This document shows positions 17,736 to 48,980 of a stretch of DNA of 64,000 bases, one piece after another. Position 1 is the first letter of the stretch; every line of letters begins with the position of its first letter. The stretch covers positions 3,100,001-3,164,000 of the forward strand of contig CATNEN010000011.1 of the NCBI GenBank assembly GCA_950097015.1. Direction: 5' to 3'. The position numbers and the translations under genes were made by a program. Under the pieces are notes generated by a model that did no database searches, was not told the origin of the DNA, and saw only the letters and a list, made by a program, of their open reading frames with translations. This stretch comes from Macrostomum hystrix (taxonomy: Eukaryota > Animalia > Platyhelminthes).

Positions 17736-18269
17736 TACAAATGTTCTTTAAGTTTGAGACTGAAATCACATGTTTATAACATTTATATTTCGTTTGCTAT
17801 CTAAAATATTTAACTTCGTCAATTTATTGCTTGTTTCCAGTGTATCCAGGATTTTTTACTACTCGTACATTACTCTAGTTGTTTTTCGTCCATCTATTTG
17901 TACTTTACTCTTGTCTTGCCTTGCTATCGTTTTTGGGCCTACCAAATACAGATACTATGTTTTACTATGTATTTATAGTATCTGTGGGGTCTACAAATGA
18001 AGGCCAATAGATGCATGAATTGCTATTTCTGCCTTGCTAACCTGCACATTACTTTTGAGTCTGATTCTTCAGGACTTGATTCTGTATCAACTATTAAAGG
18101 CATTACCGTTAATTGTTATGGTCAATAAATTATCGTTATTGCTAACGTAACGCTGGTCTGGTTTCAAAATGACGAAAGCGACTCGAATGGCAATTCAGAT
18201 TGAATGGCGTGTAGCGGACTTAATTGATTTTACTGTCTTTATTTATTTATGTTCACTTAAAGATAAGGG

Positions 18270-19772: not shown

Positions 19773-22700
19773 CTACGGTGGCTGCCGGCATCGACGGCTG
19801 GGCTGCTGACGGCAAGCTGGTTGCTTTTGCGGCGGAACGCGTGGGGCCTCTGTGGTGCTGGCTGGCTCGTTGGCGGTCAGAGGAGGGGTGCATTCCGCGG
19901 GGTTCCGTGGAGGACGGCCGCGAGGCCGCAGCGCAGGCAAGGGCACTGGACACGTTGGATCAAGCGTCGCTGGCTTCAGCCGGTCCACGGAGACGTAGTC
20001 ACGCCGGGTGCCAAGATCTAGCAGGAAAACCTTGGCGCCCCGCTCCAGCACCTTGAATGGGCCATCGTACGGCCTCTGGAGCGCCGAACGGTGACCATCG
20101 CGCCTGACGAAAACGTGCGTGCAGGTATCGAGGGCGGGCGGCCAGGAGTGCGGGCGGTGGCCGTGCTGAGAGGTCGGCGGTGGGCGGAACGCCCGAACAG
20201 CGCTACGCAGGCTGGCAAGGAACTCGCCTTGGCTGCATGAGGGCTGACAGGCCTGTAAGCATTCGCCGGGCACCGTCAGCGGCGCACCGTAAACCAGCTC
20301 GGCTGACGAAACTGCGAAGTCCTCCTTAGGAGCCGTTCGAATGCCTAGAAGCACCCACGGGAGCTCAGCGGTCCAGGCTGGCCCGGTTAGCCGCGCCATC
20401 AAGGAAGCCTTGAGCTGTCTGTGGAATCGCTCGACGAGCCCGTTGGCCTGCGGGTGAAACGCTGTCGTGTGATGGAGCTGCATGCCCAGCAGGCGAGACA
20501 CGTTGGTCCAGAGCTCCGAGGTGAATTGGGCTCCGCGGTCTGATGTGATTTCGCGGGGAACGCCGAAACGGGCGATCCAGTGGGCGATGAACGAGGAAGC
20601 GCAGGTGGCTGCCGAGGTGTCAGATAAAGGGATGGCCTCGGGCCATCGGGTGAAGCGGTCGACCACAGTCAGCAGGTGCGTGAACCCCTGCGAGGGTGGC
20701 AGAGGGCCCACGAGGTCGATATGCACATGTTCGAAACGCGCTCCTGGCACCGGGATGCTGTCGGGTGTGGTGGCCACGTGTCGCTGCACCTTGGCTGTCT
20801 GGCAAGCGATGCAGGCGCGCGCCCACTGGCCGACGTCGCGGTTCAGGCCGGGCCAGACGAAGCGATCGGCTACCAAGCGGCGGGTGCTGCGGATTGACGG
20901 GTGTGCCAGGCTGTGGATCGCCTCGAACACTGATCGACGGAAAGCTGGCGGCACCAACGGGCGCGGCCGGCCGGTGGAAGTGTCGCAAAGCAGATCCAAT
21001 CCTGAGCGCATGGCCACGCGCTTCAGCTGAAGCCCGGAATCTTGCGGCATCGGTTCGCCGAGTTTCTGTGCCTGTGCCATGGCTGTGTAGTCGACTCCGG
21101 GCATCACACTTGCGATTGTGCAGCGGGACAGCGCATCGGCCACGGGATTGTCCTTTCCAGCGACGTGCCGGATGTCGGTGGTGTACTCTGACACGTAGGC
21201 GAGGTGCCGCTGCTGTCGGGCGGACCACGGCTCGGACAGTTTGGCCATGGCTGCGGCGAGTGGCTGGTGGTCGGTGAACGCGGTAAAAGGGCGGCCTTCC
21301 AGGAGGAAACGGAAATGGCGGGTGGCCAGGTAGAGCGCCAACAACTCGCGGTCGAAAGCGCTGTACTTCTGCTCTGGGGGCCGCAGTTGCTTACTGAAAA
21401 ATGCAAGCGGCTTCCACAGGCCGCCGACCCGCTGCTCGAGGACGGCTCCGACGGCCGTTTGCGAGGCGTCAACGGTGAGTGCCGTGGGCGCCTCCGGGTC
21501 AGGGTGCACCAGCATGACTGCGTCGGCCAGGGCTCGCTTTGTGTCCTCGAATGCGTCGGTCAACTCCTGCGTCCACTGCAGTAGCTTCTCCTTGCCAGCC
21601 ATTGCGCGATAGATTGGGCGAAGGAGCTGGGCGGCTCGCGGCACGAAACGGTGGTAGAAATTCACCATGCCAGTGAACTCCTGCAGGCCCTTGACTGTCG
21701 TAGGGGGCGCAAATTTGCGTATGGCTTCGACCTTGTCAGGCAATGGCACGGCTCCCTGGCTGCTGATTCTATGGCCCAGGAAGTCGATTTCGCTACGGCC
21801 GAACTGGCATTTGGCCGGGTTGAGCAACAAGCCATTGTCTGCCAGCCGCTGGAATAGGACTCTCAGGTCGGACTGGTGTTGTTCCGGGCTGCTGCTTGCT
21901 ACCAGGAAATCATCGATGTAGGCAAACACGGACGGCAGGTCCTGGCAGATGGAGTCCACGAGCCGCTGGAAAGCCTGGGCCGCGTTCTTTAGCCCGAAGG
22001 GCATTCTGAGGAATTCGAAAAGGCCGAAGGGCGTAATGACGGCCGTCTTGGGAATGTCGGCCTCTGCGACAGGGATCTGGTGGTATCCGCGCACCAGGTC
22101 GACCTTGGAGAAGATGGAGCAACCTGCCAGACGCGCGGAGAAGTCCTGGATGTGCGGTACAGGGTAACGGTCCGGCACCGTTGCGTCGTTAAGGCGCCGG
22201 AAATCGCCGCAAGGCCGCCATCCGCCAGATGACTTCGGCACCATGTGCAACGGAGAAGACCAAGGGCTGCTGGAGCGCCGCACGATTCCGAGCTGTTCGA
22301 GCGTTCGGAACTCTTCCTTGGCTGCTGCCAGTTTGTCGGGTGGCAGGCGGCGGGCGCGGGCGTGCACCGGTGGACCCTGCGTGGGTATGTGGTGCTCGAT
22401 GCCGTGGCGTGGAGTGGCTTTCTTGAAACTCGGCTCGGTGATGCTGGGGAACTCGGCCAGTATCCGGCTGTAGGTGTCGCTGGCCACGGTTGCGGCGATC
22501 TGGGGTGCTGGTCCAGTGCCGGGCAGCAGGTGCACGCTGGCCAGAGAGCTGGCATCAAGGAGGCGGCGGTTAGGCAAATCCACCAGCAATCCGTGATGGC
22601 GTAGGAAGTCTGCGCCGATCAATGGCCGTGCGACCTCAGCCAACAAAAAGGGCCAAGTACAGGTCTTGAGGCCGATGTCCAGCGTGATAGTCCGACTGCC

Positions 22701-22967
22701 GAATGTACGGATGCGCGTGCCGTTGGCGGCGAACAGAGGCGGGCCAGTGGGCTGGTGACGGGTGTCGATGCCGGTGGCTGGAAAGATGCTGACCTCCGCG
22801 CCTGTGTCCACCAGGAAACGTCGGCCTGTGTGCACGTCGGGGATGAGCAGCAGATTGTTGCCGGCCGCCGAGATGGTCAGTGGCGACCGGCCTGCCCGTT
22901 TCCCTGGAAACTGCAGGGCTGCTGGCAACGCCTCGCCTCTGCGCCGAACTTGCGGTGGAAGTGGCAT
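19773..22967 (-). CDS. pol: Pol polyprotein (protease-RT-RNase H-integrase), translated by -1 frameshift from gag
   Basis: [10 protein letters not shown] protease, FAYIDD RT, RNase H TVDAS..ERE..TDH, integrase HHCC plus [24 protein letters not shown] motif; gypsy domain order. Confidence 0.97.
22860..22904 (-). promoter_or_regulatory. -1 programmed ribosomal frameshift signal (G GGA AAC, 6-nt spacer, 10-bp hairpin)
   Basis: Heptamer at 22904-22898 in the gag frame; stem GCCGGTCGCC/GGCGGCCGGC with one G-U pair; pol lies in the -1 frame. Confidence 0.85.
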
Positions 22968-23584
22968 AGGCCGCTTGCGTCGGTAGACGGGCGCTGCGTT
23001 GGGCGCGGCAGCTTATTTCGACCGTTGCCGAAATGGCGTGCCGCGTGCACCTCCGCCTCGCCAGCCAACTGAGCGGATGCAGCCACCGGCTGGGGCCGGC
23101 TGGCCCAGAGCTGGTCAGCGAGCTGGCCGGCCGCCCGAGGGTCCGAAAAATCCGCAGACACCAGCGCCATCCGGATGTCGTTGGGAAGTTGTTGACGGAA
23201 AAGCTCCTCGAACAACAGGCACGGTTTGTGATCGCCTAGCAGCGCCAGCATCTCGTCCATCAGCTCGGATGGGCGCCGGTCTCCTAGGCCGGAAAGGTTG
23301 AGCAGTCGGCTGGCGCGCTGCTGGCGTGTCAGACTAAAGGTACCGAGCAGGCGGGCCTTCAGTCCTTCATACTTGTCGGACTCCGGAGGACTCTCCAGAA
23401 CGTCCAGCAGGCGTTCAGCGGTCTGCTGATCCAGGGCGGCGACCAGATGGTAATACTTGGTTTCCTCCTGGGTGATGCCGCGCAGGAGAAACTGGGCCTC
23501 CGCCTGGATGAACCAAGCCCGCGGTTGGGCTGCCCAGAATGTGGGCAGTTTCAGTGCTACCGAGTTTTCGGTTGTAGGGGCCAT
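22877..23584 (-). CDS. gag: Gag (235 aa) with CHCC zinc knuckle
   Basis: [16 protein letters not shown]-terminus; [18 protein letters not shown] motif. Confidence 0.93.
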
Positions 23585-31790: not shown

Positions 31791-32675
31791 TTCAATAATA
31801 CTTTTGTATGTAGTCTTTTAAATCGCGTAGCTCTATAAATTACTGCCCATTTCCGGGCTTCGATCCTGTACTTCAATTTCAAAGTGTAGAACGTGTATAT
31901 CATGCTTCGTTTCTTTGTTTAAATCACTATACAGCATTTATTCAGTGCAAAATTGGAGTACTACGAAATTAACGTAATATTTTGCGCGTTTATGTGAATG
32001 CGGCTTAAGACAGATTTTTTTATTAGCTTTCTGCACTCGAGTGCCTTCATGGGGAGCCTTCATATAAGAATACGATTTACTGCAGACCACACGATCCGCG
32101 AAATGTATATCAATTTTACCTTGGCCCGGCTTGGCGTGGGTGACTTTTAGCAAAAAAACACGTGTCTAAAAATAAGTATTGAATAATAACACGGGGAGAT
32201 AGTAGGGAAAACAAGCTGACACTACACAGTAGCCCTTATTTTAGGCATGCGTCATGCTAAGGGTTTGCAAATGCCAATTTTTTTTGCAGCAAATATGTGA
32301 TTCAGATTTTGAGCACCTCTAGAGCGCAGTTTAACACTGCAAAAGAAAAAATTTGCTAAGGAAAAATTAGCAGATAAAATATGTGTCGAATCTTTAATGT
32401 GTTGTCATACATTTTACATGAAAACTCAACAAGCAACTCCATTGAATTAATTGGCAGTTATTAGCCAATAGTGGAGTTCCCATGCATGACAGTCATGCAT
32501 GACTGTGACCGTATACTTGATCATGAAATGAAATGTAATAATAAATGAAATTTGACATGAAATTTTATACACATCTTGACGCATGTCTCTGCTACACAAT
32601 GACACCTCAGACACACAAATTAGTCAAGTATTTTTCAGAAAGTACTCATTTAACGCGTGCTTTCTCTGCTTCTTT

Positions 32676-35487
32676 GACTGACATGTCCGTAGCCGCCTTC
32701 CAGCCGCACCGAAATTTTAAATGAGTGCCCCAGGTGTAATTTTAATAAAAATAAATCACACATGCTCTTAATTTATTGCCCCAAAACATGTTTCGCATGG
32801 TCGATGCTGTTTCTATGAAAATCTGACAGTGAAAGTTGGCTTTAGGGCGGCTGAAGGGCGGCTGGAAGGGGGCTAGAGAATATCGCTCTGTATTGGCGCA
32901 GTAAAATTGTGCCCCAAATGGAAAAAAATTTGAATGAAGTCTTAACTTTAATATGCACAATAAACTTTGGTTGATTGGCTTTTATTTATTAGAGAAGTGT
33001 GACCTTTAGTTTGAAATTCAGCATTCCAATAGGTAAAAGCGTGCCCCAACCATTTTCTTGACTAACGGCTAATGCCCCAATGCGGTAAAAAGAAGCAGGG
33101 TCAAAATTTTACTGTATATGTAAATTTCTGTACATGCCCCACAATTTCCAAATGAGTGGCGAAGTGAAATAACTTGATTGTCACTCAGACACCAGTCATT
33201 ACGACTTACAGTTGAGATTACGACTTTGCAATCGTAAAAAATAAATTCTAACTTGTTGCAAAGCTTGAGCAACGTGCTCGATCTGATGCAGACCTATATG
33301 GCTATATGTCACGTTTTAATTTTAGTTTTCCTAGTTTCTAGTTTTCAGGTTTTAATACCAGTTTTCACCGACAAGTTTTTAAACTTATCAGAATGTAACT
33401 GCCCCACAGACTGTTTAATTGGCAGCAAAAATTAAGAGCTCTTAGTCTTAGTCTTGTTACAAATATATAATTTATATCACTCATGCATAATTTATATCAC
33501 TCATGCAGGTCATGGACCAATACTAATAGACTAATGGACCAATTCATAAATTACTATCAATGTGACAATGCCCATGTTGATAGATATGTAATTGTATGTG
33601 TCCTTTAGAAATATTAAAAACTGGCATGACAATTGTCACTTTAAGATTGTAATCAAATCACTCAATATATTATATAATCTATATCTATGCCTATGTATAT
33701 TAACACTCAGTAATAATAATATTTCAAACAATAATAGCTAGCTATGGGCATGGCTATATATACAGAATTCTACATATGCACCTTCTTATGAATTATGTCA
33801 GGACATATGACTCGAATTTATTCAGGATATGATGCATGCAACTAGAGGAGCTTTATATTAAATCCAACTTTATTGTCACTTTTCTAAACAATTAACAAAG
33901 TAATAATAATACTAGGCCTAATAGCTAGACTAGCTATTGATATTAAAAAATACAAAAGTCTAGTAGCTATTTACAATCTATTTTCTATTTTCTATTTCTA
34001 TTCTATTTACAAGTTAGGCCTTGATGCCTTACAAGCTAAGTATTACCATTAGCTTCGATATAGTTAGAACGCTTCTCTTTTACTCATTCCTAGCTAACTA
34101 ACTTGGAAAAAATAAGTTCAATAGGCAAAACTTTTAGTCTTTTTTTAATTAATATACATATTGCTATGGCACATTTTTAATACACTTGTTTGAGTTACAG
34201 GTCTGGAATGTAATATATTCTTTAAATCAATAACAAAAATAATTGTATCAATCTCCAAATTATATTTGATAGATAACTCATATTCACAAAATCTGTCTCT
34301 GTGTATAATATACACTCAACATCAAGTGCTTCCATGTTAGTTTCACTCGTGCCTTTTAAGTTTTATATCTCAGTAATGTATATCATATAAACATGATAAT
34401 TCATGTTTTTCAAGTTTCTTCTCAATATCTGCTACTTCCACTCATGTCCTTTCATATCTGAGTAATGTATATCATATAAACATGATAATTCATGTTTTTC
34501 AAGTTTCTTGTCAATATCTGCTAGTTCCACTCATGTCCTTTCATATCTGAGTAATGTATATCATATAAACATGATAATTCATGTTTTTCAAGTTTCTTCT
34601 TAATATCTGCTAGTTCCACTCATGTCCTTTCATATCTGAGTAATGTATATCATATAAACATGATAATTCATGTTTTTCAAGTTTCTTCTCAATATCTGCT
34701 ACTTCCACTCATGTCCTTTCACATCTGAGTAATGTATATCATATAAACATGATAATTCATGTTTTTCAAGTTTCTTGTCAATATCTGCTAGTTCCACTCA
34801 TGTCCTTTCATATCTGAGTAATGTATATCATATAAACATGATAATTCATGTTTTTCAAGTTTCTTCTCAATATCTGCTACTTCCACTCATGTCCTTTCAT
34901 ATCTGAGTAATGTATATCATATAAACATGATAATTCATGTTTTTCAAGTTTCATCTCAATATCTGCTACTTCCACTCATGTCCTTTCATATCTGAGTAAT
35001 GTATATCATATAAACATGATAATTCATGTTTTTCAAGTTTCCTCTTAATATCTGCTAGTTCCACTCATGTCCTTTCATATCTGAGTAATGTATATCATAT
35101 AAACATGATAATTCATGTTTTTCAAGTTTCTTCTCAATATCTGCTACTTCCACTCATGTCCTTTCATATCTGAGTAATGTATATCATATAAACATGATAA
35201 TTCATGTTTTTCAAGTTTCTTCTCAATATCTGCTACTTCCACTCATGTCCTTTCATATCTGAGTAATGTATATCATATAAACATGATAATTCATGTTTTT
35301 CAAGTTTCTTCTCAATATCTGCTACTTCCACTCATGTCCTTTCACATCTGAGTAATGTATATCATATAAACATGAAAATTCATGTTTTTCAAGTTTCTTC
35401 TTAATATCTGCTAGTTCCACTCATGTCCTTTCATATCTGAGTAATGTATATCATATAAACATGATAATTCATGTTTTTCAAGTTTCT
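32676..35487 (+). repeat. Left inverted arm: ~1.69 kb unique sequence plus 89-bp tandem array
   Basis: Begins gactgacatgtccgtagccgcc; the reverse complement ends at 44295. Confidence 0.92.
34366..35487 (+). repeat. 89-bp tandem array, ~12.6 copies, each with palindrome AAACATGA-taat-TCATGTTT
   Basis: Unit starts spaced by 89 (34460, 34549 ... 35439). Confidence 0.95.
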
Positions 35488-35584
35488 ATGATGTGTATCA
35501 TATTAGCACTCAAGGATGCAAACAAAGCCTCTATGATTATTGCATTTCAGGCCTTTCAAGTGATTGTCGATATTGTCACTTACC

Positions 35585-38500
35585 ATGAATTTCACTAGCT
35601 CAGTGACCCTGGAAGACATCAAGAAGGTCATTGTATCTGGTCAGGTTGATGTTGCTGAGTTTTCCGCTGGGATTCCTACTTGGCGTAATGCGAATGGCAT
35701 ACTTCAGAGACTTGCTGATTTACTTGGTCTTGATGGCACTAACGAATCAAGTCGCAGATGGCTCTATGACAAATTCAGAAGAAGCAATATCATCGCTGAA
35801 GTTCAGGCTGTCATCACCGGATATTCTTTGAGTGAGATACCGAGCAATACAGCGTAAGTATTGCTTTTTTGATGCGCTCTTACTTTGGCTTTTCTTATAC
35901 ATAGTCATCTATAATTTCGCCTTCTTCGTTTTGATTTCAGGTCTTCCAGCAGTACAACAGCTGAAACGCAATTACACCAAAGCTTCGTTGACATTGACCA
36001 CGTTTTCGATGGTAGTGGCAATCTGAAAAAGAGCTGGCACGACTATGTTCTTCTGTCGTTCTCTTCATCACTTAAGTGCACCCTGTGTATGCGCAGGCAT
36101 AAGCACAATGCAGGCTACATATCTGCAGATGTTTACTGCAATGTTGATGGTTGCACTGGCCTATTCCGTTTGAAAGTGCTCCACTCTGGAAACAGGTTGC
36201 TCTGTTCGCTTGAAGTCAAAACGAATCCTACTAAGCATGCTACCAAGGCACGTCCTCTATGTGGGGAGCGACGTATTGAATTGGCCAAAAGAGTTTGCTC
36301 TTCAAGTGCCACGCGGGTAAGGGCAGAAATCGCAGCAGATGAGGACACTCGGTTGTTGCCATCTCCTAATGTACTACGAATTGCTGCGAGTAGGCAACGA
36401 CATCAGGACCGGCAGTCGTCTGATACTCTGCTGGATCTTATTATTCAAGGACAGAGCATGCAACCTGCTTACGCAAGGAATGTCTGTGTGCAATTTGGCG
36501 CATCGGAACCCCAATTCGTGCCTCTTTGGTTGAACAGTGCTTTTGAAGTGTTGCGTTCGATGCAAGCGAACAGTAAGCCAATCGTACTGGGCATGGATTC
36601 AACCGGAGCGCCTATTTCAAAACCCAAAGACAGTCAGCAGAAGGATGTTTACTACCACGCTGTGGTACTGCGTCATCCTCAAACTGGAGCGCAACCCGTT
36701 GCCGTTATGGAACTTTTATCGTCTTCGCAGACGGGAACAACTTTAAAGTTTGTATTTGACTCCTGGATCACGGCAGCAAGATTATCAGTAAAAAATCTTC
36801 GCGTGGCTCAGGTCACCCTCGATTTTAATTTGCCTACTTTGCGGGCTCTCCTTATGGGCATTCACGGGATGGAAATCATTCCTTTTCTGCGGCACTGCTA
36901 TGCCGTTCTATCGTTTAAATTAAGCTATCAAGAACTGCAGAAATTTACGTTGATCGGCTTCGGCCGGAGCCATATCATGCGCGAGTTTTGTGATTGGCCT
37001 GATGTGGCGAATTGCAGGAATCCGGAAGCCAGGAATGGTTGGAAGCATTTCTTCGGTGCCTTGCTACGATGCACCAGCTTGCACCAGGTACAGCAAGTGT
37101 ACAAAAGCTTTCTACGGCTTCTGCTTTGCCCATCCCGGAGGAGTGTCGACTCGTCACTCGCTCTTCTGCACGCAGCCGCTGCAGATCAACTTGAAGACGG
37201 AGTTTTCGTTCCACCCGAAAGTTTCATGTACGTAATGCCGGATACGACATTGAAGAGAGCTTCGCCATTCTTCCATCTAGCGGATGCATTGCACAATGAG
37301 GTGAAAGCTAGTGCCGAAGCACAAGTTGTTCAAAGTGAGAGTGAACTGACACCAGATCCGAATCCGTACTACTGCCCCAGTCTCGCTGGTAAACTTACCA
37401 ATGTTGTGATGCCATACCTGCCACTTTGGTGCGGTATCATGCTGGATCCCGTGAGATATGCTGCGTCCAATAGCGGTGCATTCAAAAGTGTTTCTCGTGA
37501 CGCTGAGGGATTCACGGAAGGCCACACGGAGCTCTGGATGAATATCGTTAAAAACCTGCTTCACGGGGGTCGGGACAGCTCCATGAGGAACTTCTTGGCT
37601 AACCAAAGTCGGTTCCTGCAGGGGTTGCATCGGATCTTTATGGAACTTCCAGAGACTTCCAGTCACACCGCCGACGAGCAGTCAGAGAACTCCAGTTCCA
37701 GTCACCCTGAGCAGCCAGAGACTTCTAGTCACACCGACGAGCAGTCAGAGAACTCCAGTTCCAGTCACCCTGAGCAGCCAGAGACTTCTAGTCACACCGA
37801 CGAGCAGTCAGAGAATCCCAGTTCCAGTCACCCCGATCAGCCTGAAATCGATGGCGATGCTCGTATTTCTAACTTACAGGGCTCCTGTTCTTTCAGGAAC
37901 CCTTTCACATCAATGCTAAATGACCACGAAGCGACTGAAGAAACTTCGCTGAGCTCCGAGGTAGTTAATAAAAAACGAAGGGTCACTTCAGGACGCTACA
38001 CTGCAGCTACGACGCGTGTTCTCCTTCGAGACCTAACAAATCATGCACAGGAACAATTTACTCTTCTAAAAAATGGTGGCCGCTCGACCAGTGTACCTTT
38101 TAATGGGAAACTCGTAACAGTAATGCTGCACAACACTTGTACTGTTGATGGGTTCCTCACTGGTATTGCATTTGCATATAGAGATCGCGAGACATTCCGT
38201 GAAGCCATTTTGGCGTCTCGACTTCAAGATCTTCATCGGCTAGGCCGGTACTGCAGAGAAGCTACCGCTAGCCGCACCGATCAAGAAGCCATGCATGCCC
38301 GTGCTACACTGATAGTACAAACAGAGTCATTCTGGCGCAAAGGCTTTCTGCGTTGGCGGCGAAACGGTAGCAGCATCGTTGACGGAAATCTCGAAAGCAG
38401 CGAACTGGACATAGTTCTGGAGTTACTTGGAAATAGCCATTTATTCCTGATAAGAAGCATCTGCCGCAACGATGCCTGCCGCCATCGACAACTGGAATCA

Positions 38501-39300
38501 TTTTTTTCTGGGCTTGTAATCCAACACGAGGAAGGGCCAATCGAGTCACCCTACAGCTTTATCTGCACTGTTTTCCGTGAGTCTGGCGTTCGGGAATGCT
38601 GCCACTGCAACAGTTTGCGAGATGTATTGCCACCGACGTACTCCTCAGAATTGCCTCCGCTGCTTGTTGTTGCTGTACCCGACTCTGTCGATAGAACTGT
38701 TCGAGTCTCATTGGGAGAACGAGAGGTAACTCCCTTTCGAAACAGCCCTGCTCGGTGAGTTCTTGCACTCTATATATGTACTCTACTATCGTCTGATTAC
38801 TTGTGTCACCTAGCTAATGCAGGGCTGCTGTGCTGGACCCGAAAAAGGAAGTGTCAAGTACTTGTAGTTTTTATATACACTGTCGATAAATATTATTTTA
38901 CTTATTGGTAAAAAATATCAAGGGTACCTGTAAGGCCGTAGTCCCTAAAGCGTTGAGTAGTCCGAGTAAAGCTACGAGTACAATTTTTATGCTGTCAGAC
39001 GGAGAACACATTTGCGGTTCTAGATATTGACTTTACTAGAAATAGACACAAATTTTTGTTCAATAAGTAACTTGTTTATTAAATTAAATGTATCATTATG
39101 TTACGTAAAACTAAATTTTTTATAGATACAGACTGTTCTGCTCGACATACTTTCAAGCAGAGCGTGCGCACTGGGTAGCAACTATACATTCTGACGATGG
39201 TAGCGTCCTAAACTATGACGACCTCGGGACTACCAGTGGTGCGCTGCGACGGCAACGAAATGTAGGTCGCCTAAACCTGGCGATGTACGCTTTGTTTTAA
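35585..39300 (+). CDS. NOF-like (MULE superfamily) DDE transposase with C-terminal USP/C19-like protease fold, ~1085 aa
   Basis: join(35585-35853, 35941-38754, 39126-39300), both introns phase 2 GT-AG, open throughout. Transposase motifs GMDSTG, PVAVMELL, TLDF, SH, YLPLW, TELW..VK. C-terminal HNTCTVD, CxxxxC/CCHC, LPPLLVV, YRL, AHWVA, YDD. Confidence 0.8.
37639..37840 (+). repeat. ~63-bp in-frame tandem repeat (PETSSHTDEQSENSSSSHPEQ x3) in the transposase linker
   Basis: Visible in both DNA and translation. Confidence 0.9.
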
Positions 39301-40318
39301 ATATGTTCGCTAGTGCTTGGATAAGCTACGGGTTTTCGCTTTACCAGTGCCTACTCATGTCTGATGTCATACCATGCACCCACATGAAGGCGTCTTCCCG
39401 CCGCACCCTGCTTAAATGGCAAAATGTCTGTCTCTGCGCCTTTTCTTATTCTTTTCGTCACATCACTGCTTTTACTTTCTTTTCTATATAAATGACCCAG
39501 ATATGTATCATAATTTTTGCGGCTACTAATCCTACTAATCCAGTTATCGTTTTGTTAAGTAGTTTGTCGTTGCCACTAGATCATCGGTTCCTACAATATT
39601 TTTAATATCTCTTATAAACAGGATTGATTAGTCAGGGTGCACACGAAACATTCTGCACATTAATCGATTAACCTTTTAACTGACTATGAATCCGTTGGCA
39701 TGACTTCTTAGGATAGGAAGGCTTTATTGTGCTTGATAGCGCCTGATTTTACTATCTTTTTTATTAAATAGCAATGTAGTACGCTCGTGCGCCTTGTATG
39801 TATTGTTTTACCTTGTATGCCCAAGGTGTTGATCATTATTGAACTTACCATCGGGCCTCAAATGCATAAGGCAAGTTCATAAGATAAATTCAAGTTCCGG
39901 TTCTGAATATTTTCCAATCAGATTTTGACGGTCCGACTCGTTTATTCGTTTTGTCAGTAGTCATAAACATAATATACGAGTACTATAGAATAGAATAGAA
40001 TATAATAATGGAGAGCTCACACGGTTAAACATTTCACCTTACGATCAAGTCGTCAAACATTGTACGCTCGTATATCAAAACACATCAAAGCGAAAGCTAA
40101 ATAAAAAAGTGTAGTACTATTGGTATCAGGGGTCCGCTATCTCCTGCGTAAGATCGTATGGCAACTCGTACGCATAAACATGAAGCATAAGGAGTACATC
40201 CCTTAATTGACATTGAGCTATTGAGTTAAATTCACAAGTTTCGATTGCACAAAAGCGCATTCATATGGTTCGCAAAAATCATCAAATTATTCTCGTCCCT
40301 GCAATTAGCAACATAAGT

Positions 40319-41749
40319 TTAGTTGATGAACTTTTGTCTTGGGCGCAAAGGCCTACTTGTGCGACTTATTTTGGCTGACGTATTTCCGTCTTTCTTGTCT
40401 GCGTTCACAAATTTTGCCGATCGCTTTCTCGATAAAGATAATTGCTCTCGCTGCTTCTGCTCTTGCTGCTTCTCCAGTTCTCGCTGCTTCTCCAGTTCTC
40501 GATGCTTCTCCTGCTCTTGCTGCTTCTCCAGTTCTCGCTGCTTCTCCAGTTCTCGATGCTTCTCCAGTTCTCGCTGCTTCTCCAGTTCTCGATGCTTCTC
40601 CTGCTCTTGCTGCTTCTCCAGTTCTCGCTGCTTCTCCAGTTCTCGATGCTTCTCCAGTTCTCGCTGCTTCTCCAGTTCTCGATGCTTCTCCTGCTCTTGC
40701 TGCTTCTCCAGTTCTCGCTGCTTCTCCTGCTCTTGCTGCTTCTCCAGTTCTCGCTGCTTCTCCAGTTCTCGATGCTTCTCCAGTTCTCGCTGCTTCTCCA
40801 GTTCTCGATGCTTCTCCTGCTCTTGCTGCTTCTCCAGTTCTCGCTGCTTCTCCAGTTCTCGATGCTTCTCCAGTTCTCGCTGCTTCTCCAGTTCTCGATG
40901 CTTCTCCTGCTCTTGCTGCTTCTCCAGTTCTCGCTGCTTCTCCAGTTCTCGATGCTTCTCCAGTTCTCGCTGCTTCTCCAGTTCTCGATGCTTCTCCTGC
41001 TCTTGCTGCTTCTCCAGTTCTCGCTGCTTCTCCTGCTCTTGCTGCTTCTCCAGTTCTCGCTGCTTCTCCAGTTCTCGATGCTTCTCCAGTTCTTGCTGCT
41101 TCTCCTGCTCTTGCTGCTTCTCCAGTTCTCGATGCTTCTCTAGTTCTCGCTGCTTCTCCAGTCCTCGCTGCTTCTCCATTTCTCGCTGCTTTTCCACTTC
41201 TGACTCTCCCTGCTCAAATTCTGCTCCCCTCGCAGTAGACAATTGAGCAGAATCAATCACATTTTTTACCTGATGCACACACGCAACAGATATTTTAATT
41301 ATACTACGTATTTCATCAGGAGCTACGGATACAGCCAACTCCAGATGATCAAGTGCCTTTGTTACATGCTGCTTTGCAATCACAGCTGAAAGCTGCGAAC
41401 TCTCTTCTTCCAACTTCCAACCATTATGTTTCAACCACTCCTTTCCGGCAGCAGCCGCTTTCGCTCGCTTGGAATGGTCTTGGTGACAATTCGATGATTT
41501 TTTTCTATGTCGAAAAATTGCTACACCATCACGGTAGGCCAGAGCTAAACCATTTTCCGAAATATAATTGACATTCGTTCCATGAGCCCTTCGAAGTAGA
41601 GAACCGGACAGTGGAATGTTTAGGATCTGAGCAGCTACACGAACACAAGTCGCTGTTAGTCTGATGCCGACGACCACTTCCCTGTCGGGAAAGGGTAAGG
41701 GCAGTTCTCCTTTTGGCTCAAAGACCGAAAAAGGATCGTTAATGAAAGC
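40319..41749 (-). CDS. Second element gene: unknown N-terminal domain, ~41 x 6-aa E/K/R/Q-rich repeat, basic C-terminal tail (start or upstream exon not resolved)
   Basis: 452-aa open frame extends in frame to a tttcag acceptor at 41750; 18-bp repeats encode ELEKQR/ELEKHR/EQEKQQ; tail RKRS..RPLRPRQK. Confidence 0.65.
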   Translation of the reverse strand, partial: AFINDPFSVFEPKGELPLPFPDREVVVGIRLTATCVRVAAQILNIPLSGSLLRRAHGTNVNYISENGLALAYRDGVAIFRHRKKSSNCHQDHSKRAKAAAAGKEWLKHNGWKLEEESSQLSAVIAKQHVTKALDHLELAVSVAPDEIRSIIKISVACVHQVKNVIDSAQLSTARGAEFEQGESEVEKQREMEKQRGLEKQRELEKHRELEKQQEQEKQQELEKHRELEKQRELEKQQEQEKQRELEKQQEQEKHRELEKQRELEKHRELEKQRELEKQQEQEKHRELEKQRELEKHRELEKQRELEKQQEQEKHRELEKQRELEKHRELEKQRELEKQQEQEKQRELEKQQEQEKHRELEKQRELEKHRELEKQRELEKQQEQEKHRELEKQRELEKHRELEKQRELEKQQEQEKHRELEKQRELEKQQEQKQREQLSLSRKRSAKFVNADKKDGNTSAKISRTSRPLRPRQKFIN

Positions 41750-41975
41750 CTGAAATAAATTATATAACTTTTATTACATGCAAAAACATGCATCCATAAC
41801 ATCGAAAATAACTTCAAAGCGTTGACAGAAATATAGTGACATAAAAGACAAGTGTACACTCTTATTTACTTTACTTTTTCTTACTTAAACAAACTCTACT
41901 AAGCAAATACTGGACTTGGTTAAGTGAATCCTAGCATTGAAGATAAGAAAAAACAGGAAAACCATGAATTATTAC

Positions 41976-42606
41976 GCAGATATGAAAGGACATGAGTGGA
42001 AGTAGCAGATATTAAGAAGAAACTTGAAAAACATGAATTATCATGTTTATATGATATACATTACTCAGATATGAAAGGACATGAGTGGAACTAGCAGATA
42101 TTGAGAAGAAACTTGAAAAACATGAATTATCATGTTTATATGATATACATTACTCAGATATGAAAGGACATGAGTGGAAGTAGCAGATATTAAGAAGAAA
42201 CTTGAAAAACATGAATTTTCATGTTTATATGATATACATTACTCAGATGTGAAAGGACATGAGTGAAAGTAGCAGATATTGAGAAGAAACTTGAAAAACA
42301 TGAATTATCATGTTTATATGATATACATTACTCAGATATGAAAGGACATGAGTGGAACTAGCAGATATTAAGAAGAAACTTGAAAAACATGAATTATCAT
42401 GTTTATATGATATACATTACTCAGATATGAAAGGACATGAGTGGAACTAGCAGATATTGACAAGAAACTTGAAAAACATGAATTATCATGTTTATATGAT
42501 ATACATTACTCAGATATGAAAGGACATGAGTGGAAGTAGCAGATATTGAGAAGAAACTTGAAAAACATGAATTATCATGTTTATATGATATACATTACTG
42601 AGATAT
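41976..42606 (-). repeat. 89-bp tandem array, ~7 copies, inverted relative to the left array
   Basis: Unit starts 42062, 42151 ... 42596. Confidence 0.95.
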
Positions 42607-44295
42607 AAAACTTAAAAGGCACGAGTGAAACTAACATGGAAGCACTTGATGTTGAGTGTATATTATACACAGAGACAGATTTTGTGAATATGAGTTATCT
42701 ATCAAATATAATTTGGAGATTGATACAATTATTTTTGTTATTGATTTAAAGAATATATTACATTCCAGACCTGTAACTCAAACAAGTGTATTAAAAATGT
42801 GCCATAGCAATATGTATATTAATTAAAAAAAGACTAAAAGTTTTGCCTATTGAACTTATTTTTTCCAAGTTAGTTAGCTAGGAATGAGTAAAAGAGAAGC
42901 GTTCTAACTATATCGAAGCTAATGGTAATACTTAGCTTGTAAGGCATCAAGGCCTAACTTGTAAATAGAATAGAAATAGAAAATAGAAAATAGATTGTAA
43001 ATAGCTACTAGACTTTTGTATTTTTTAATATCAATAGCTAGTCTAGCTATTAGGCCTAGTATTATTATTACTTTGTTAATTGTTTAGAAAAGTGACAATA
43101 AAGTTGGATTTAATATAAAGCTCCTCTAGTTGCATGCATCATATCCTGAATAAATTCGAGTCATATGTCCTGACATAATTCATAAGAAGGTGCATATGTA
43201 GAATTCTGTATATATAGCCATGCCCATAGCTAGCTATTATTGTTTGAAATATTATTATTACTGAGTGTTAATATACATAGGCATAGATATAGATTATATA
43301 ATATATTGAGTGATTTGATTACAATCTTAAAGTGACAATTGTCATGCCAGTTTTTAATATTTCTAAAGGACACATACAATTACATATCTATCAACATGGG
43401 CATTGTCACATTGATAGTAATTTATGAATTGGTCCATTAGTCTATTAGTATTGGTCCATGACCTGCATGAGTGATATAAATTATGCATGAGTGATATAAA
43501 TTATATATTTGTAACAAGACTAAGACTAAGAGCTCTTAATTTTTGCTGCCAATTAAACAGTCTGTGGGGCAGTTACATTCTGATAAGTTTAAAAACTTGT
43601 CGGTGAAAACTGGTATTAAAACCTGAAAACTAGAAACTAGGAAAACTAAAATTAAAACGTGACATATAGCCATATAGGTCTGCATCAGATCGAGCACGTT
43701 GCTCAAGCTTTGCAACAAGTTAGAATTTATTTTTTACGATTGCAAAGTCGTAATCTCAACTGTAAGTCGTAATGACTGGTGTCTGAGTGACAATCAAGTT
43801 ATTTCACTTCGCCACTCATTTGGAAATTGTGGGGCATGTACAGAAATTTACATATACAGTAAAATTTTGACCCTGCTTCTTTTTACCGCATTGGGGCATT
43901 AGCCGTTAGTCAAGAAAATGGTTGGGGCACGCTTTTACCTATTGGAATGCTGAATTTCAAACTAAAGGTCACACTTCTCTAATAAATAAAAGCCAATCAA
44001 CCAAAGTTTATTGTGCATATTAAAGTTAAGACTTCATTCAAATTTTTTTCCATTTGGGGCACAATTTTACTGCGCCAATACAGAGCGATATTCTCTAGCC
44101 CCCTTCCAGCCGCCCTTCAGCCGCCCTAAAGCCAACTTTCACTGTCAGATTTTCATAGAAACAGCATCGACCATGCGAAACATGTTTTGGGGCAATAAAT
44201 TAAGAGCATGTGTGATTTATTTTTATTAAAATTACATCTGGGGCACTTATTTAAAATTTCGGTGCGGCTGGAAGGCGGCTACGGACATGTCAGTC
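41976..44295 (-). repeat. Right inverted arm of the foldback element
   Basis: Reverse complement of the left arm, with fewer array units. Confidence 0.92.
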
Positions 44296-45980
44296 TTCTA
44301 CTTTTGACACGGTGCAGATGCTGGACACAGTTGTTTTGTGATTCAAGAAGTCCAAATGCGTTTTTTAGAGTTTGGAGTTTACTGAAAAATATTTTGGCAC
44401 TGTCATCAAGTTTTTTTATCGACGAAAATATCTGCTACATGAGTTTTTTCGAAGCAAAAATCATGCGAAGGTGCGGTGCAGAAAGCGAATTTTCGTATTG
44501 GTATGGTAGGCAACGAATGATTAAATGTACACAAAGTGCTCGGACGATTTAAGGGTCAGTGGTGGTACAAGTCACAAAGTATTAATCGTCAAGTGACTAG
44601 AGCCACGTACTTAAGTCAATCAGGGAACAAATATTAATCGTCAAGTTGATTGCAGTCGACGCAGACACTTTTTTCCGTTGCAGATGCTGGCGACTCCAGC
44701 AGACATTGTGCATCCAGTAAAGGCACGAGGGGCATTCGATCTGGCCAAAATGGGAGGTTTGCAACCGAACCTACACGTGACGTACGTGTACTTTTGCAAG
44801 CACAACTTATGCAGAAAACTTACCCACTGAATTGCAGCTATCTTTCGACCAGGTGGCTCCTCTTTACCGCGCAGGCATGACATGTCGTCTTCTGATCTGC
44901 ACATTCGGAGAAGCTTTTGATCACCGTCTTCATTAATGCCCTCGCCACGGAAAGCTTTCGTTGAATATTAGATAGGACTGTATGTGAGTCTAGAAGAAGG
45001 TTTCTACCAAACAGAGAGACGAAGACGCCACAGGAGTCGGAGTCAGTTTGCTGCGTGCAAATGCGATGCTCCAGCTTGAAACACTTGTTTCTTGCACGAT
45101 GAATGAATAGCGCGACGCTGTTATCGACGTTGGACAGCGTCAGCAGCTCGCTAAAACACACAGTAAGAAGAATATTAATTGTGGATTTTCATTTTTAATG
45201 TACCATAATGTACGCATTACAAGTTTTCATACTTCTTTTTCTTCTAAAGTTTCTCTTTGTATACTTCGCTTTCCTTTTACCCCACTGCTCTTCAGCTCCT
45301 TCTGGGCTCATAAAGTCACTTTTTCTCTTACGCCGGCAGAAAAATGGACGAGACTTTGTTCGGCAAGCGATGCTGGCTTTATTTATTTTGTCGTGAATGA
45401 AAGCTGCATTGCTTTTGCAGAAGTCAGCTACAGAAAGAGTTAAGTTGTAAGTAGATTTAATTGTTTTTAACCAGCTTTCTACATGAGCGTTAGGAAAAGG
45501 TGATTTAAGATTCAAACTCTGCTGCAGGCTATGCCAGCCGATGGCTGCCAGCAGAGGAAGGTATGCCAATTAGTAGCGTGAAATCAGGAAGTCAACTAAA
45601 TCAGGACGGTTAAAGCTCATTGTCCTTTTCGCAGTTACATAGTTGGATAAGCAACGAACCTTTAATGTAGTTGAAGTACGCAAAAAATACAGATCGCCTG
45701 TACAGAGCATTGCTGGGCCTGTTATCAGAGCTATCTGAGCTATCAGACAAATCTGAGTCATCGGTGCCATCCTCTGGATCAGAGCCATCCATGGATTTTG
45801 ACGAATCAATGTCATCAGCGGAATCCACCAAATGTGTATAAAATTTTCTCTGCAAAGAAGCAGAGAAAGTGCACTTTAAATGAGAATATCTGAAAAAGTA
45901 CTTGACTAATTTGTGTGTCTGAGGTGTCATTGTATGACATGAGGTAGCAGGGACATGCGTCAAGATGTGTACAAAATTTC
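44296..45980 (-). pseudogene. Decayed NOF/MULE-like transposase C-terminal half with Ulp1 (C48)-like motif and possible PHD-like finger
   Basis: Fragmented frames give YLPLL..NAHVESWLKTIKS (compare YLPLW..GHTELWMNIVKN in the intact gene), QQTDSDSCGVFV at 45053-45018, then CHAC..C..C; several stops and frameshifts. Confidence 0.65.
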
Positions 45981-48980
45981 GGGTCTATGAATTTTGCTAG
46001 CAGGCAATGTGCTAGCCGAAATGTGCTAGCTGAAATCTGCTAGCCGAAATCTGCTAGCCGAAATCTGCTAGCCGAACTTTGCTAGCAGGAACTCGTGAAC
46101 CCCCATTTCACGAACCGGACCAACTGGCGGACTAAATGCGGACGAAAATCGGATCAACGGCCCCCATATAAATTAAAGTAACGATGGAGCCAATATAGAT
46201 TTTTAAGAACAGTGGAGTAAATAGCGAGAAATGGATCTACTGAATATACTTGGGATCGGAACCTTATAGAGAGAATTAATTTTAGAATCTGCAAGTCGAT
46301 TCTGCAAGTTAGTCCAAACACAGACAGCAATGGTGCTCGGTCCGAATTAGGAAGACTACCACTATTATATAGTATTCAAAAAAGAAGCCTTCAATACTGG
46401 TCCTCAGTTCGGAGCCGACCAGACTCCATCATCGCGAAATTGGTGGCAGATACAGAATACAGCGATGTTGGCATTGGGGAAAAAATGAATAGTGAAGTAA
46501 TGCGGAATTGTCAACAGACTAGAAAAACAAAGTCCATAAAAACGCACAGAGAGAACTTTGAGTCACAGTTTCGAAGCCACTGGACTCAGAGGATGGGAAA
46601 ATCAGCCAAGCTCAGCCACTTCTATTACACGTTTAAGAAAGATTTCTCCCGAGAAAAGTACCTAACAATAATCTCTAACCCAGAACAAAGGCGCACAATG
46701 TCCCGATTTCGTCTAGGAAACCACAAACTGGCCTGTGAGACATTGCGCACTGTAAGACCGAAAATCGCCTATGAAAACAGAACATGCCCAAAATGTAGAG
46801 TCGAGGTAGAGAGCGAAACTCATATTCTCTTTAGATGCGATTGGTCCGTTTATGTTCCAATTAGAAATAAACTCATAGAGAAAGTAGCAGGTACTGTTCG
46901 AAATTTCGAAAGCCTAACAGCTGATGACAAAATTGTGTATTTAATTACACAGAAAAGCACAGAATTAACAGAAAGTTTTGTGGACTTCATAGAAAGCATA
47001 ATTAAAGCTAGATAAAAAGAGACTGCCCTGAGGCCCATAGTAGAATGCAAAAACACAATATAGCTATTCTCCTTTCGGTCAGTTTTAATTTTCTCTTTAA
47101 ATTTCAATATTTCATTTTTTGTTTTAATGCCTTTGTTTATTTCAAAAATTTGTTTTTTTCAAACATTTTATTAACCTAAAATTACGCATGCTACTGTTTT
47201 CCTATCGCCTTCTCTTTAAAAAATCGATTTGTTTAACCTCAAACATAAAATAAACAAAAAAAATCAGCACCCAATCGGCGTGCGCACCTCAATAATAATA
47301 ATAATAATAATAATATATTGTTGCATATGAAGTAATAGTGTGTATTAATGGTTTGTTAAGTACGAAACATGTGAGCAAAAGTATGACCATGTGAGCGGCG
47401 CTCTTGATTTCGCCAACTCGGAGAAAGTGGCTATACTACTTGATTATACTCTAGTGACAACTAACTATTATCAGCTGCGGATAGTTGTAATAAAATTGCA
47501 GGAGCTTTAGTGCACTGCACTGCCCAAGTACTTCAGCTATACGTGTAGCTTAGTCAGGTACAATTACAATTATTTAGCATTACTCCATCTGGACTTCTGA
47601 CCCGCATGCCTTCGGTCCATTGTAAATTACGTTTTACTGTTGCCTAGCCAGTAATTATACTCCGGAAAGCAGCAATGCAGTACCAAAAAACCTATAAATA
47701 AAGCTTTGTAATTTGAATGCGCGAACTGCAGCAAGCCGCACGAATGACTCATGCTCCTAGACTCAAATTGTTTATACATGCAACACAGTTTCTAGCATGT
47801 CTGGACGAATAAATAGGATATTCCCTTTTCGCGTATAAAACACGAGAAATTTTGTATCTTGTCTTGTAAGAAATCGGCGAGTTTCGTGCGAGATTTTCTT
47901 GGCTAGATTTTCGTGCGCTTTTTTATTTGACAAGAAGTTCTCTTCTCAAAGGTAATTCTTTAGCGAACTTCTCGGCTCGCAAGAGAATCTCTTCTTGACG
48001 AGAAAAGAAAAAATCTTTTTAATGACCCAGCCCACTGATCATTAGTAATACGTTATGTAACAGGGCTTATGACTCTACTTTTCTCTCTTGGTAGCGTATT
48101 CTTCTGGCCTCCTTTGTTACTTATTTCTCTCTCTAACTCTTTGTATTCTCCTTTAAATCTTATCTTGGTGACCCTGAAAAGGGCCGTTTTAACTCCACAA
48201 CTCTTATGTTGTGAGCTTCCCTTAAGGTAGCGCTTTTGCACTGGCACGAGCGGTTTATCCTTCTAAGGCACTAGGTCTCTTATTCTCCAGTCTCAGCCTC
48301 AACCTCTGTCTTATCTCCACACTGGACAATATCTTCTTAATATATTGAATGACACAACAATTTCACTTATTCAAAAGGTGCTACTTATAAAAAATATATA
48401 AAAAATATTTATAGTATATGGCATATAAAATATATAGCGCAGAAATATAAAAAATAATTGAGATACGAGGTCTCGTATACTGTATAGCGCAAAAATACTG
48501 AACTGTTACAGTTAGGTGCTTGCATATTCTTTCAGCCAGCTTTGTTGCATAATATTCAGCAACAAATCCCATTGGAGCTATGCCAATAAATTGCACTCAC
48601 CCTTTCTTTGAAGGCTAGTCATAGCTTACTGCTCAACCAGTAGATGCAGATTATAGACTTGAGCAAAGTTAATTTCGCAAGAAAATTTTAATCAAGCTAG
48701 CAAAATCCTCGCTAGCAAAGTTCCTGCTAGCAAACTTCGGCTAGCAAACTTAATCGGCTAGCAAACTTCGGCAAGCAAATTTCAGCTAGCTAAATCCTCG
48801 ATAGCAAAGTTCCTGCTAACAAAGTTCCTGCTAGCAAAGTTCCTGCTAACAAAGATCGGCTAGCAAAGTTCCTGCTAACAAAGATCGGCTAGCAAAGTTC
48901 CTGCTAGCAAAGTTCGGCTAGCAAAAAACAGCAAGCAAATTTCGGCTAGCAGATTTCGGCTAGCAAATCTCGTACTCCCC
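45981..48980. mobile_element. Non-autonomous MULE/foldback-like element, 3.0 kb
   Basis: Flanked by (c/t)aaaatttc 9-bp TSD (45972-45980 / 48981-48989); G-starting imperfect TIRs with inverted subterminal ~11-12-bp repeats (tgctagccgaa) at ~45995-46095 and ~48700-48966; interrupts sequence that is contiguous at 32500-32600 (inverted copy). Confidence 0.75.
46170..47316 (+). mobile_element. 5'-truncated LINE (L2/Crack/Daphne-like ORF2 C-terminus, 3' UTR, (TAA)n tail)
   Basis: SELGRLPL..YW, RFRLGNHKL, RTCPKC..ESETHILFRC..YVPIR; taa repeats at ~47290-47316. Confidence 0.8.

Follow-up and report, generated by a model that had tools for sequence, protein, structure and literature searches.

The stretch of DNA analysed here, 64,000 nucleotides in length and referred to below as the window, belongs to the flatworm Macrostomum hystrix and corresponds to C11:3100001-3164000 (contig CATNEN010000011.1; assembly label G000). 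Between its positions 32677 and 44294 it contains an apparently intact mobile element of 11,618 bp, to which no strand is assigned, made up of two long inverted arms, two arrays of an 89-bp tandem repeat on the inner side of these arms, and a central region in which two genes point towards each other. The element begins with ACTGACATGTCC and ends with GGACATGTCAGT, and it is there that the homology with the copies on contigs C2 and C24 and in Macrostomum lignano stops. In a preliminary description of the locus the limits had been placed at 32676 and 44295; the structure described between them stands, but each limit has to be moved inwards by one base, since three copies have three different bases preceding ACTGACATGTCC.

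The unique part of the left arm (32677..34360, + strand, 1,684 bp) matches the reverse complement of the unique part of the right arm (42611..44294, - strand, also 1,684 bp) at 1682 of 1684 positions, that is, with two differing sites and an identity of 99.88% in a separate alignment, and when the array units are included the repeat finder extends the inverted arms to 2,325 nt (32676-35000 and 41971-44295). In either arm only two short 2-copy repeats are found within the outer 1,684 bp, the arrays being on the inner side, where Tandem Repeats Finder gives 12.7 copies of the 89-bp unit (97%) on the left (34361..35487, + strand) and 7.2 copies (96%) on the right (41971..42610, - strand). The arrays had already been described as unequal, and they are so, with a slight shift from the 12.6 and 7 copies proposed at that time. 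The possibility that the 89-bp unit is a repetition of the terminal motif was considered and rejected, as the part in common is only the 7-mer CATGTCC, and the 8-mer is not enriched. A scan of the window with Rfam gave no match. The arrays enclose a centre of 6,483 bp with one long open reading frame (ORF) on each strand, the two being convergent, and in this way the repeat finders and the ORFs agree with the earlier picture of near-identical inverted arms and inner 89-bp arrays around some 6.5 kb that hold a convergent gene pair.

The two convergent genes

Gene 1, on the + strand, starts with the ATG at 35585, 98 bp inside the end of the left array, and its coding sequence of 3,258 nt, which is distributed over three exons with GT-AG introns, specifies 1085 amino acids (aa); the transposase of about 1085 aa that had been predicted is thus exact under the three-exon model. 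Exon 1 (35585..35853) agrees with the protein annotated in M. lignano and is followed by a GT donor at 35854, and intron 1 (35854-35940) is as in that protein, which joins a small upstream ORF to the long ORF. Exon 2 (35941..38754) contains a predicted WRKY-fold zinc finger (approximately 35963-36250; AF2 model, VIA Z 7.2), the DDE core (approximately 36263-37660, with D at 36596, D at 36821 and E at 37529), a Ser/Glu-rich 63-nt coding repeat (37649-37842), and the first part of a USP-like domain (approximately 38050-38754), whose Cys box NTC is at 38132-38140. The long ORF (36089..38758) reaches a stop at 38756-38758, which was considered as the end of the gene and rejected in view of a conserved GT-AG intron and of a third exon carrying a His box; the relatives with an uninterrupted protease domain extend beyond that stop. 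Intron 2 has its donor at 38755 and its acceptor AG at 39124-39125, with the frame restored, and exon 3 (39126..39300) provides the USP His box AHW (H at 39169), a YDD (39214-39222) and the stop codon at 39298, with 170 of 171 nt identical in M. lignano.

Gene 2 approaches from the opposite side, on the - strand. Its main exon (40319..41749) encodes a conserved N-terminal domain of 165 aa, an 18-nt coding repeat, (ELEKQR)n, at 40446-41201, and a basic tail. The splice acceptor at 41749, 222 bp inside the end of the right array, is also the start of the M. lignano gene model, and the candidate start ATGs at 41790-41803 (- strand) would mark a candidate first coding exon. The product of gene 2 has no match in Pfam, the PDB sequences or NCBIfam. 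Its homologues adjoin homologues of the transposase and converge with them at at least six other loci of this genome, and the protein of a sister family, presented below, is 49-50% identical to it and has the same AFI.DP start at the acceptor. Gene 2 is a conserved partner gene, and it is found as such in three subfamilies.

Copies, sister families and insertion sites

The genome search covered 220 Mb in 42 contigs. A second full copy is located at C2:6487513-6498734 and is 98-99% identical to that of the window, the three exons of gene 1 differing by 1 base altogether; further remnants are present on C24 (a solo arm), C1 (a partial copy) and C38 (a fragment), and in the whole genome the ends of the element number only five or six. 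In M. lignano, a complete copy that shares these ends is found on contig NIVC01000212, with a perfect 9-bp target duplication, CCTAGTCAG, on both sides, which is the length of duplication that had been predicted. This M. lignano copy also contains a nested GC-rich insertion of 3.1 kb with an open frame of 950 aa, situated in the array on the side of gene 1 (L032:6832-9954), its genes being otherwise intact. The number of array units varies between copies, with 12.2/8.7 at C2 and 7.2/5.2 in M. lignano, to be compared with the 12.7/7.2 of the window.

The copy of the window lies within another repeat, and three paralogues of this host repeat run uninterrupted across the insertion point, so that they represent empty sites. 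The host repeat is of about 1.8 kb, with ends of 130 bp that are 84-85% complementary, and more than 40 related ends are present in the genome. Its left inverted end (32554..32676, no strand assigned) has its partner at 45853-45985, its interior occupies 44295-45852, and the insertion point is at the inner margin of the left one of these two ends; a 14-bp microsatellite (46006-46086) is found just outside the host repeat.

The same organization appears in more distant forms. A sister family is represented by two copies, C2:1246967-1260316 and C34:2151327-2165570, with unique arms of 1.37 kb, inner arrays of a 111-bp unit (20.6/10.4 and 21.4/13.6 copies), ends that start with ACTGACG, and 8-bp duplications in both copies; the two genes are again present and convergent. 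In a third family, located at C11:4.46 Mb, the inner arrays are of a 53-bp unit, and a transposase is faced by a repeat-bearing ORF. The convergent two-gene layout first described for the window is thus present there and kept in the sister families, and its recurrence in the sister and third families indicates that it is a trait of the lineage. Two further observations concern these relatives: the element at C11:4.46 Mb carries a nested non-LTR retrotransposon ORF with endonuclease and reverse transcriptase (L049:4078-7215), and a 29-bp array of 85 copies is found beside a related element at C11:4478688-4481170.

The element of the window is a discrete insertion of mobile DNA, with defined ends and target duplications of 8-9 bp. 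It could be objected that the arms are a one-off inverted duplication or an artefact of assembly, with no mobile element behind them, given that an identity of 99.88% between arms can be produced by collapsed or mis-joined reads, and that the copy number is very low. However, the structure and its ends recur on another contig and in the independent assembly of another species, the latter with the 9-bp duplication, and this same structure at C2 and in M. lignano means that neither chance nor artefact is at work; furthermore, there are paralogous empty sites, and two arm-specific differences are common to the copies. A lack of other copies with the same ends had been named beforehand as the refutation, but those of C2, of the solo arm on C24 and of M. 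lignano do end at the same bases, so that the refutation by a one-off duplication fails. For these reasons we give practically no credit to the absence of a mobile element.

A side observation on these insertion sites is that the base before and the base after the element are complementary in 4 of 4 insertions (G/C in the window, G/C in M. lignano, T/A at C2:1246967/1260316 and C/G at C34:2151327/2165570), which hints at what may be a preference for palindromic targets.

The transposase and its probable place in the Mutator superfamily

The exons of gene 1 were searched and folded one by one. Word-indexed protein searches with the whole ORF, the family profile or the core alone gave a hypothetical protein of M. 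lignano as the only match, other candidates having probably been crowded out by low-complexity words, and a full HMMER scan with phmmer, over 1.8 billion representatives, gave 249 relatives. The domains detected by Pfam in 45 long relatives are PHD (12), Ulp1/C48 (7), UCH/USP (5), OTU (1) and, below threshold, MULE (2), with C48 or OTU occupying in some relatives the place that the USP has here. Gene 1 itself gave no domain match in Pfam and NCBIfam, the latter returning only low-complexity noise, and the profile of its core had no match among the PDB sequences. The best viral match of the protein is an uncharacterised bracovirus protein (E 1.7e-9); Phantom MULE proteins have been reported from viruses of the bracovirus type.

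From an alignment of 63 relatives, AlphaFold modelled the initial 573 residues of exon 2 with a mean pLDDT of 90. Residues 8-103 of this model align with AtWRKY18 and AtWRKY1 (Z 7.0-7.2, rmsd 2.6-2.7, 74-78 residues), and the N-terminus of the gene 1 protein would accordingly be, in the model, a zinc finger of WRKY fold, that is, of the WRKY/GCM1 type that characterizes the MULE transposases. The core that follows is RNase-H-like; its D-D-[C/G]xxH-E signature is intact, it includes a large helical insertion, and the spacing from D to E is of 236 residues. When numbered on the translation of exon 2, the catalytic residues are D219, D294 and E530, and they are kept in 54/54, 62/62 and 50/51 rows of the alignment, and in the [C/G]xxH between the second D and the E the histidine is present in 62 of 63 rows, with C in 42 and G in 19 as the preceding residue. 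The best structural match of the core found with VIA is ISCth4, of the IS256 family (PDB 6xgx), with Z 12.6 over 274 residues and 7% identity, and lower matches are the P element (Z 11.1), Hermes (Z 9.8) and RAG1/Transib (Z about 8). The IS256 family is a bacterial relative of Mutator.

At the level of profiles, an hhalign comparison with the canonical MULE ORFs found in this genome reaches 84% probability (E 7.7e-6) and brings the two D residues and the CxxH of gene 1 into line with theirs, and the ten named neighbours in the ESM Atlas are all MULE clusters; the loci of this genome that are recognized by PF10551 number 44, none of them from the gene 1 family. Together with the predicted WRKY fold, these results bear out the assignment of the enzyme to the Mutator-related world that was proposed at the outset. 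As for the branch, the published catalytic alignment of Rehavkus is composed of eight blocks (PMC6446971, Additional file 3), namely DATGSVV, YYYA.VV, PV.EM.S..H, VtDFSfA.I.A..FN, LC.AH..K, SPFY, PLWS and tsN..E..F..K, and when these are read by eye all eight recur in the family consensus and, in a diverged form, in the protein of the window.

The C-terminal tail is of a different nature. Its exon-2 part, modelled alone and with the last exon not included, has a pLDDT of 75 (about 90 in the core), and the top Foldseek matches of this model are USP21, USPL1, USP2 and other USPs; with VIA, over 48,161 chains, the top 17 are USPs and 30 of the 31 top rows are USPs or Pan2 pseudo-USPs, with Z not above 6.9 for this model lacking the last exon. 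In a similar way, the profile of the domain against the PDB sequences finds USPs only, the best of them USP9X (E 7e-4). In the alignment of the domain the NTC Cys box and the CxxxxC and CxC pairs are kept, and exon 3, which has a weak Peptidase_C98 His-box match, adds AHW and YDD. The tail is thus predicted to be a USP fold with the Cys, His and Asp motifs in order, and at the level of the modelled fold we regard the assignment as sound. No paper describing a USP-type protease on a MULE-type transposase was found in the literature searched.

Taken as a whole, the element is very probably a low-copy DNA transposon of the cut-and-paste type, autonomous in appearance and active in recent times, that belongs to the Rehavkus branch within the Mutator (MULE) superfamily. 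Several data weigh against this. The Pfam MULE family (PF10551) has no match to the gene 1 protein, and two relatives match it only below the threshold; the comparison with Rehavkus is one of motifs, with no scored alignment; and the PHD finger, which is a Rehavkus trait, does not appear in exon 1 or exon 2 with E up to 1, for which reason a Rehavkus-related variant is to be understood here, and not a strict member. Structurally, the P element transposase is nearly as good a match as ISCth4 (Z 11.1 against 12.6). Concerning mobility, the window copy is flanked by GCTTCTTTG and CTTCTACTT, an imperfect duplication, 7 bases at one terminus of the C2 copy are altered, and there are only two full copies in the genome; as neither of these has a clean duplication, current mobility in this host is not established.

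The proximity of the Z values of the P element and Hermes to that of ISCth4, and the missing Pfam MULE match, could also mean that the foldback element belongs to some other superfamily, P/Galileo-like or hAT-like, and that its resemblance to Mutator is superficial, the more so as Galileo likewise has long and internally repetitive inverted ends. Nevertheless, the Pfam search of the gene 1 protein finds neither a THAP nor a BED/hATC domain, the N-terminus has in the model the WRKY fold of the MULE transposases, the catalytic residues of the core line up in hhalign with those of canonical MULE ORFs, the catalytic blocks agree with those of Rehavkus, and the Atlas neighbours are all MULE, so this alternative seems to us most unlikely, and a Mutator-type enzyme related to Rehavkus is the interpretation that we maintain in what follows.

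Evolution of the element and comparison with known systems

A comparison of the copies of the window and of C2 shows 21 sites at which the copies differ although within each copy the two arms agree, which indicates that the arms evolve in concert. Only 2 sites distinguish the left from the right arm, and these are common to the two copies. The arm with the G..G variant and the longer array adjoins gene 1 in the window and gene 2 in C2; as arm variant and array size are swapped relative to the genes, the centre appears to have been flipped, as would be expected from recombination between inverted repeats, although the evidence for the flip is thin, consisting of two linked sites and the array sizes.

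In the comparison with M. lignano, the identity of the coding parts amounts to 98-99%, or 96% for the short tail of gene 2, with a coding dS of 0.02-0.08 and an omega of 0.08-0.41, or 0.08-0.31 without the 42-codon tail of gene 2, and, as judged from codon substitution, both genes show purifying selection. For the arms, introns and spacer the figure is 86-97%. The host sequences that flank the element in M. lignano correspond in M. hystrix to a collinear block, C38:34256538-34265687, with 69-78% nucleotide and 66-86% protein identity, and in this block there is no element, the site being empty. Since the hosts are well diverged and the insertions non-orthologous, horizontal transfer is the simplest reading, and a transfer between Macrostomum lineages is to us reasonably probable on the basis of one syntenic block.

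Selection and conservation could also be accounted for, with no horizontal transfer, by a former transposon that has been domesticated and whose gene pair now serves the host. The omega of 0.08-0.31 in both genes, the presence of only two full copies, the damaged end at C2 and the imperfect duplication in the window would all fit such a history. So would a relative of the transposase at 31.55 Mb of C38 (C38:31549970-31554997), which has an open frame of 776 aa and no inverted arms within 20 kb, and which may itself be a decayed or domesticated copy. However, host service does not account well for non-coding arms, arrays and introns that are also 86-97% conserved between species, nor for copies at non-orthologous sites, with the syntenic site of the M. 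lignano copy empty here, nor for a window copy that lies inside a repeat, and in M. lignano both the ends and the 9-bp duplication are intact. Domestication is, in consequence, very unlikely. The flatworm Rehavkus-related lineage would be one of two-gene elements, with a transposase composed of WRKY, DDE and deubiquitinase-like USP-tail parts and a lineage-specific coiled-coil partner, convergent in all the subfamilies, and the family of the window in particular would have been transferred horizontally, and very recently, between distantly related Macrostomum, its coding dS being 0.02-0.04 as against a protein identity of only 66-86% in the hosts; this complete picture is one that we favour by a little.

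In an element of this type, the transposase would bind at both termini and probably also within the subterminal 89-bp arrays, would pair the two ends, cut the element out and insert it with a staggered cut of 8-9 bp. The inverted arms would be homogenised by gene conversion, and recombination between them would flip the centre. Accessory roles would fall to the protease tail and to the coiled-coil product of gene 2, perhaps, although this is a low-confidence guess, in relation to ubiquitin-like modification or silencing in the host, or to nuclear or complex assembly.

In the remainder of the window, a 29-bp satellite of 68 copies, strongly G-rich on the + strand, occupies 15777-17736, and a long terminal repeat (LTR) retrotransposon pol ORF is found on the - strand at 19773-23584, open over 1064 aa, with reverse transcriptase, RNase H and integrase; it is preceded by a DUF7041 ORF and makes up the GC-rich part of the window.

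Rehavkus, a branch that lies at the root of the Mutator superfamily, has received little study, and the literature searched offers on it almost only Repbase entries, from insects and one annelid. To these the element of the window adds a clean example from a flatworm, to all appearance complete, whose enzyme structure is well predicted and which has a conserved partner gene. The USP module, seen beside the Ulp1 and OTU of the relatives, makes the recurrent link between transposases and proteases of the ubiquitin family testable in a transgenic model flatworm; arm homogenisation and the flipped centre illustrate how long inverted ends behave; and the identity across species makes the element a candidate for transposon transfer from one flatworm to another.

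The union of foldback arms and a Mutator-related enzyme had been presented in the preliminary description as a combination of two designs, which is not new, because the published Rehavkus design already consists of long inverted ends, subterminal tandem repeats and a Mutator-related transposase. Some foldback elements, FB itself included, are grouped with Mutator, and a foldback form together with a Mutator-type enzyme is known in Rehavkus, Phantom, Tm1 and FARE; the combination is therefore already known, and the basic design is not new. FB-NOF, Tetris, Tm1 of Meloidogyne and FARE of Arabidopsis share with the window element the long inverted ends with tandem repeats, the 9-bp duplications and the recombination-prone arms, but in FB-NOF the arms are of repeats out to the termini, whereas here the outer 1.68 kb is unique. 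Maize MuDR has, as here, two convergent genes read from the two ends, an enzyme of the Mutator superfamily and a duplication of about 9 bp, but its ends are of about 0.2 kb and without arrays, and gene 2 is without detectable relatives outside the group of the window element; the likeness to mudrA and mudrB is thus treated as an analogy of layout rather than as demonstrated homology. ISCth4 resembles the gene 1 protein as the best structural match of its catalytic core, but it is without WRKY or USP domains and its D-to-E spacing is much shorter. The KI-MULEs and other transposases fused to Ulp1/C48 or OTU also join a cysteine protease of the ubiquitin system to a MULE-type transposase, but in the window transposase the protease module has the USP (C19) fold.

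The closest comparison is that with Rehavkus, placed near or within the MULE superfamily, with 9-bp duplications, a PHD finger and one ORF, and represented in Repbase by Rehavkus-1_TC and -3_TC (Tribolium) and -1_HR (Helobdella), its hosts being insects and an annelid. The window element shares with it the 9-bp duplication, seen in the M. lignano copy, and the long inverted ends with a subterminal minisatellite, and 12 of the 45 long relatives of the gene 1 protein carry PHD fingers. It differs in its predicted USP-fold tail, in a conserved convergent second gene as against the one ORF of the published table, in its flatworm host, and in arrays that lie inside 1.7 kb of unique arm sequence. 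The novelty lies, then, in a second gene that is conserved, in arms that evolve in concert, in a centre flipped between the two copies and in the near identity between species.

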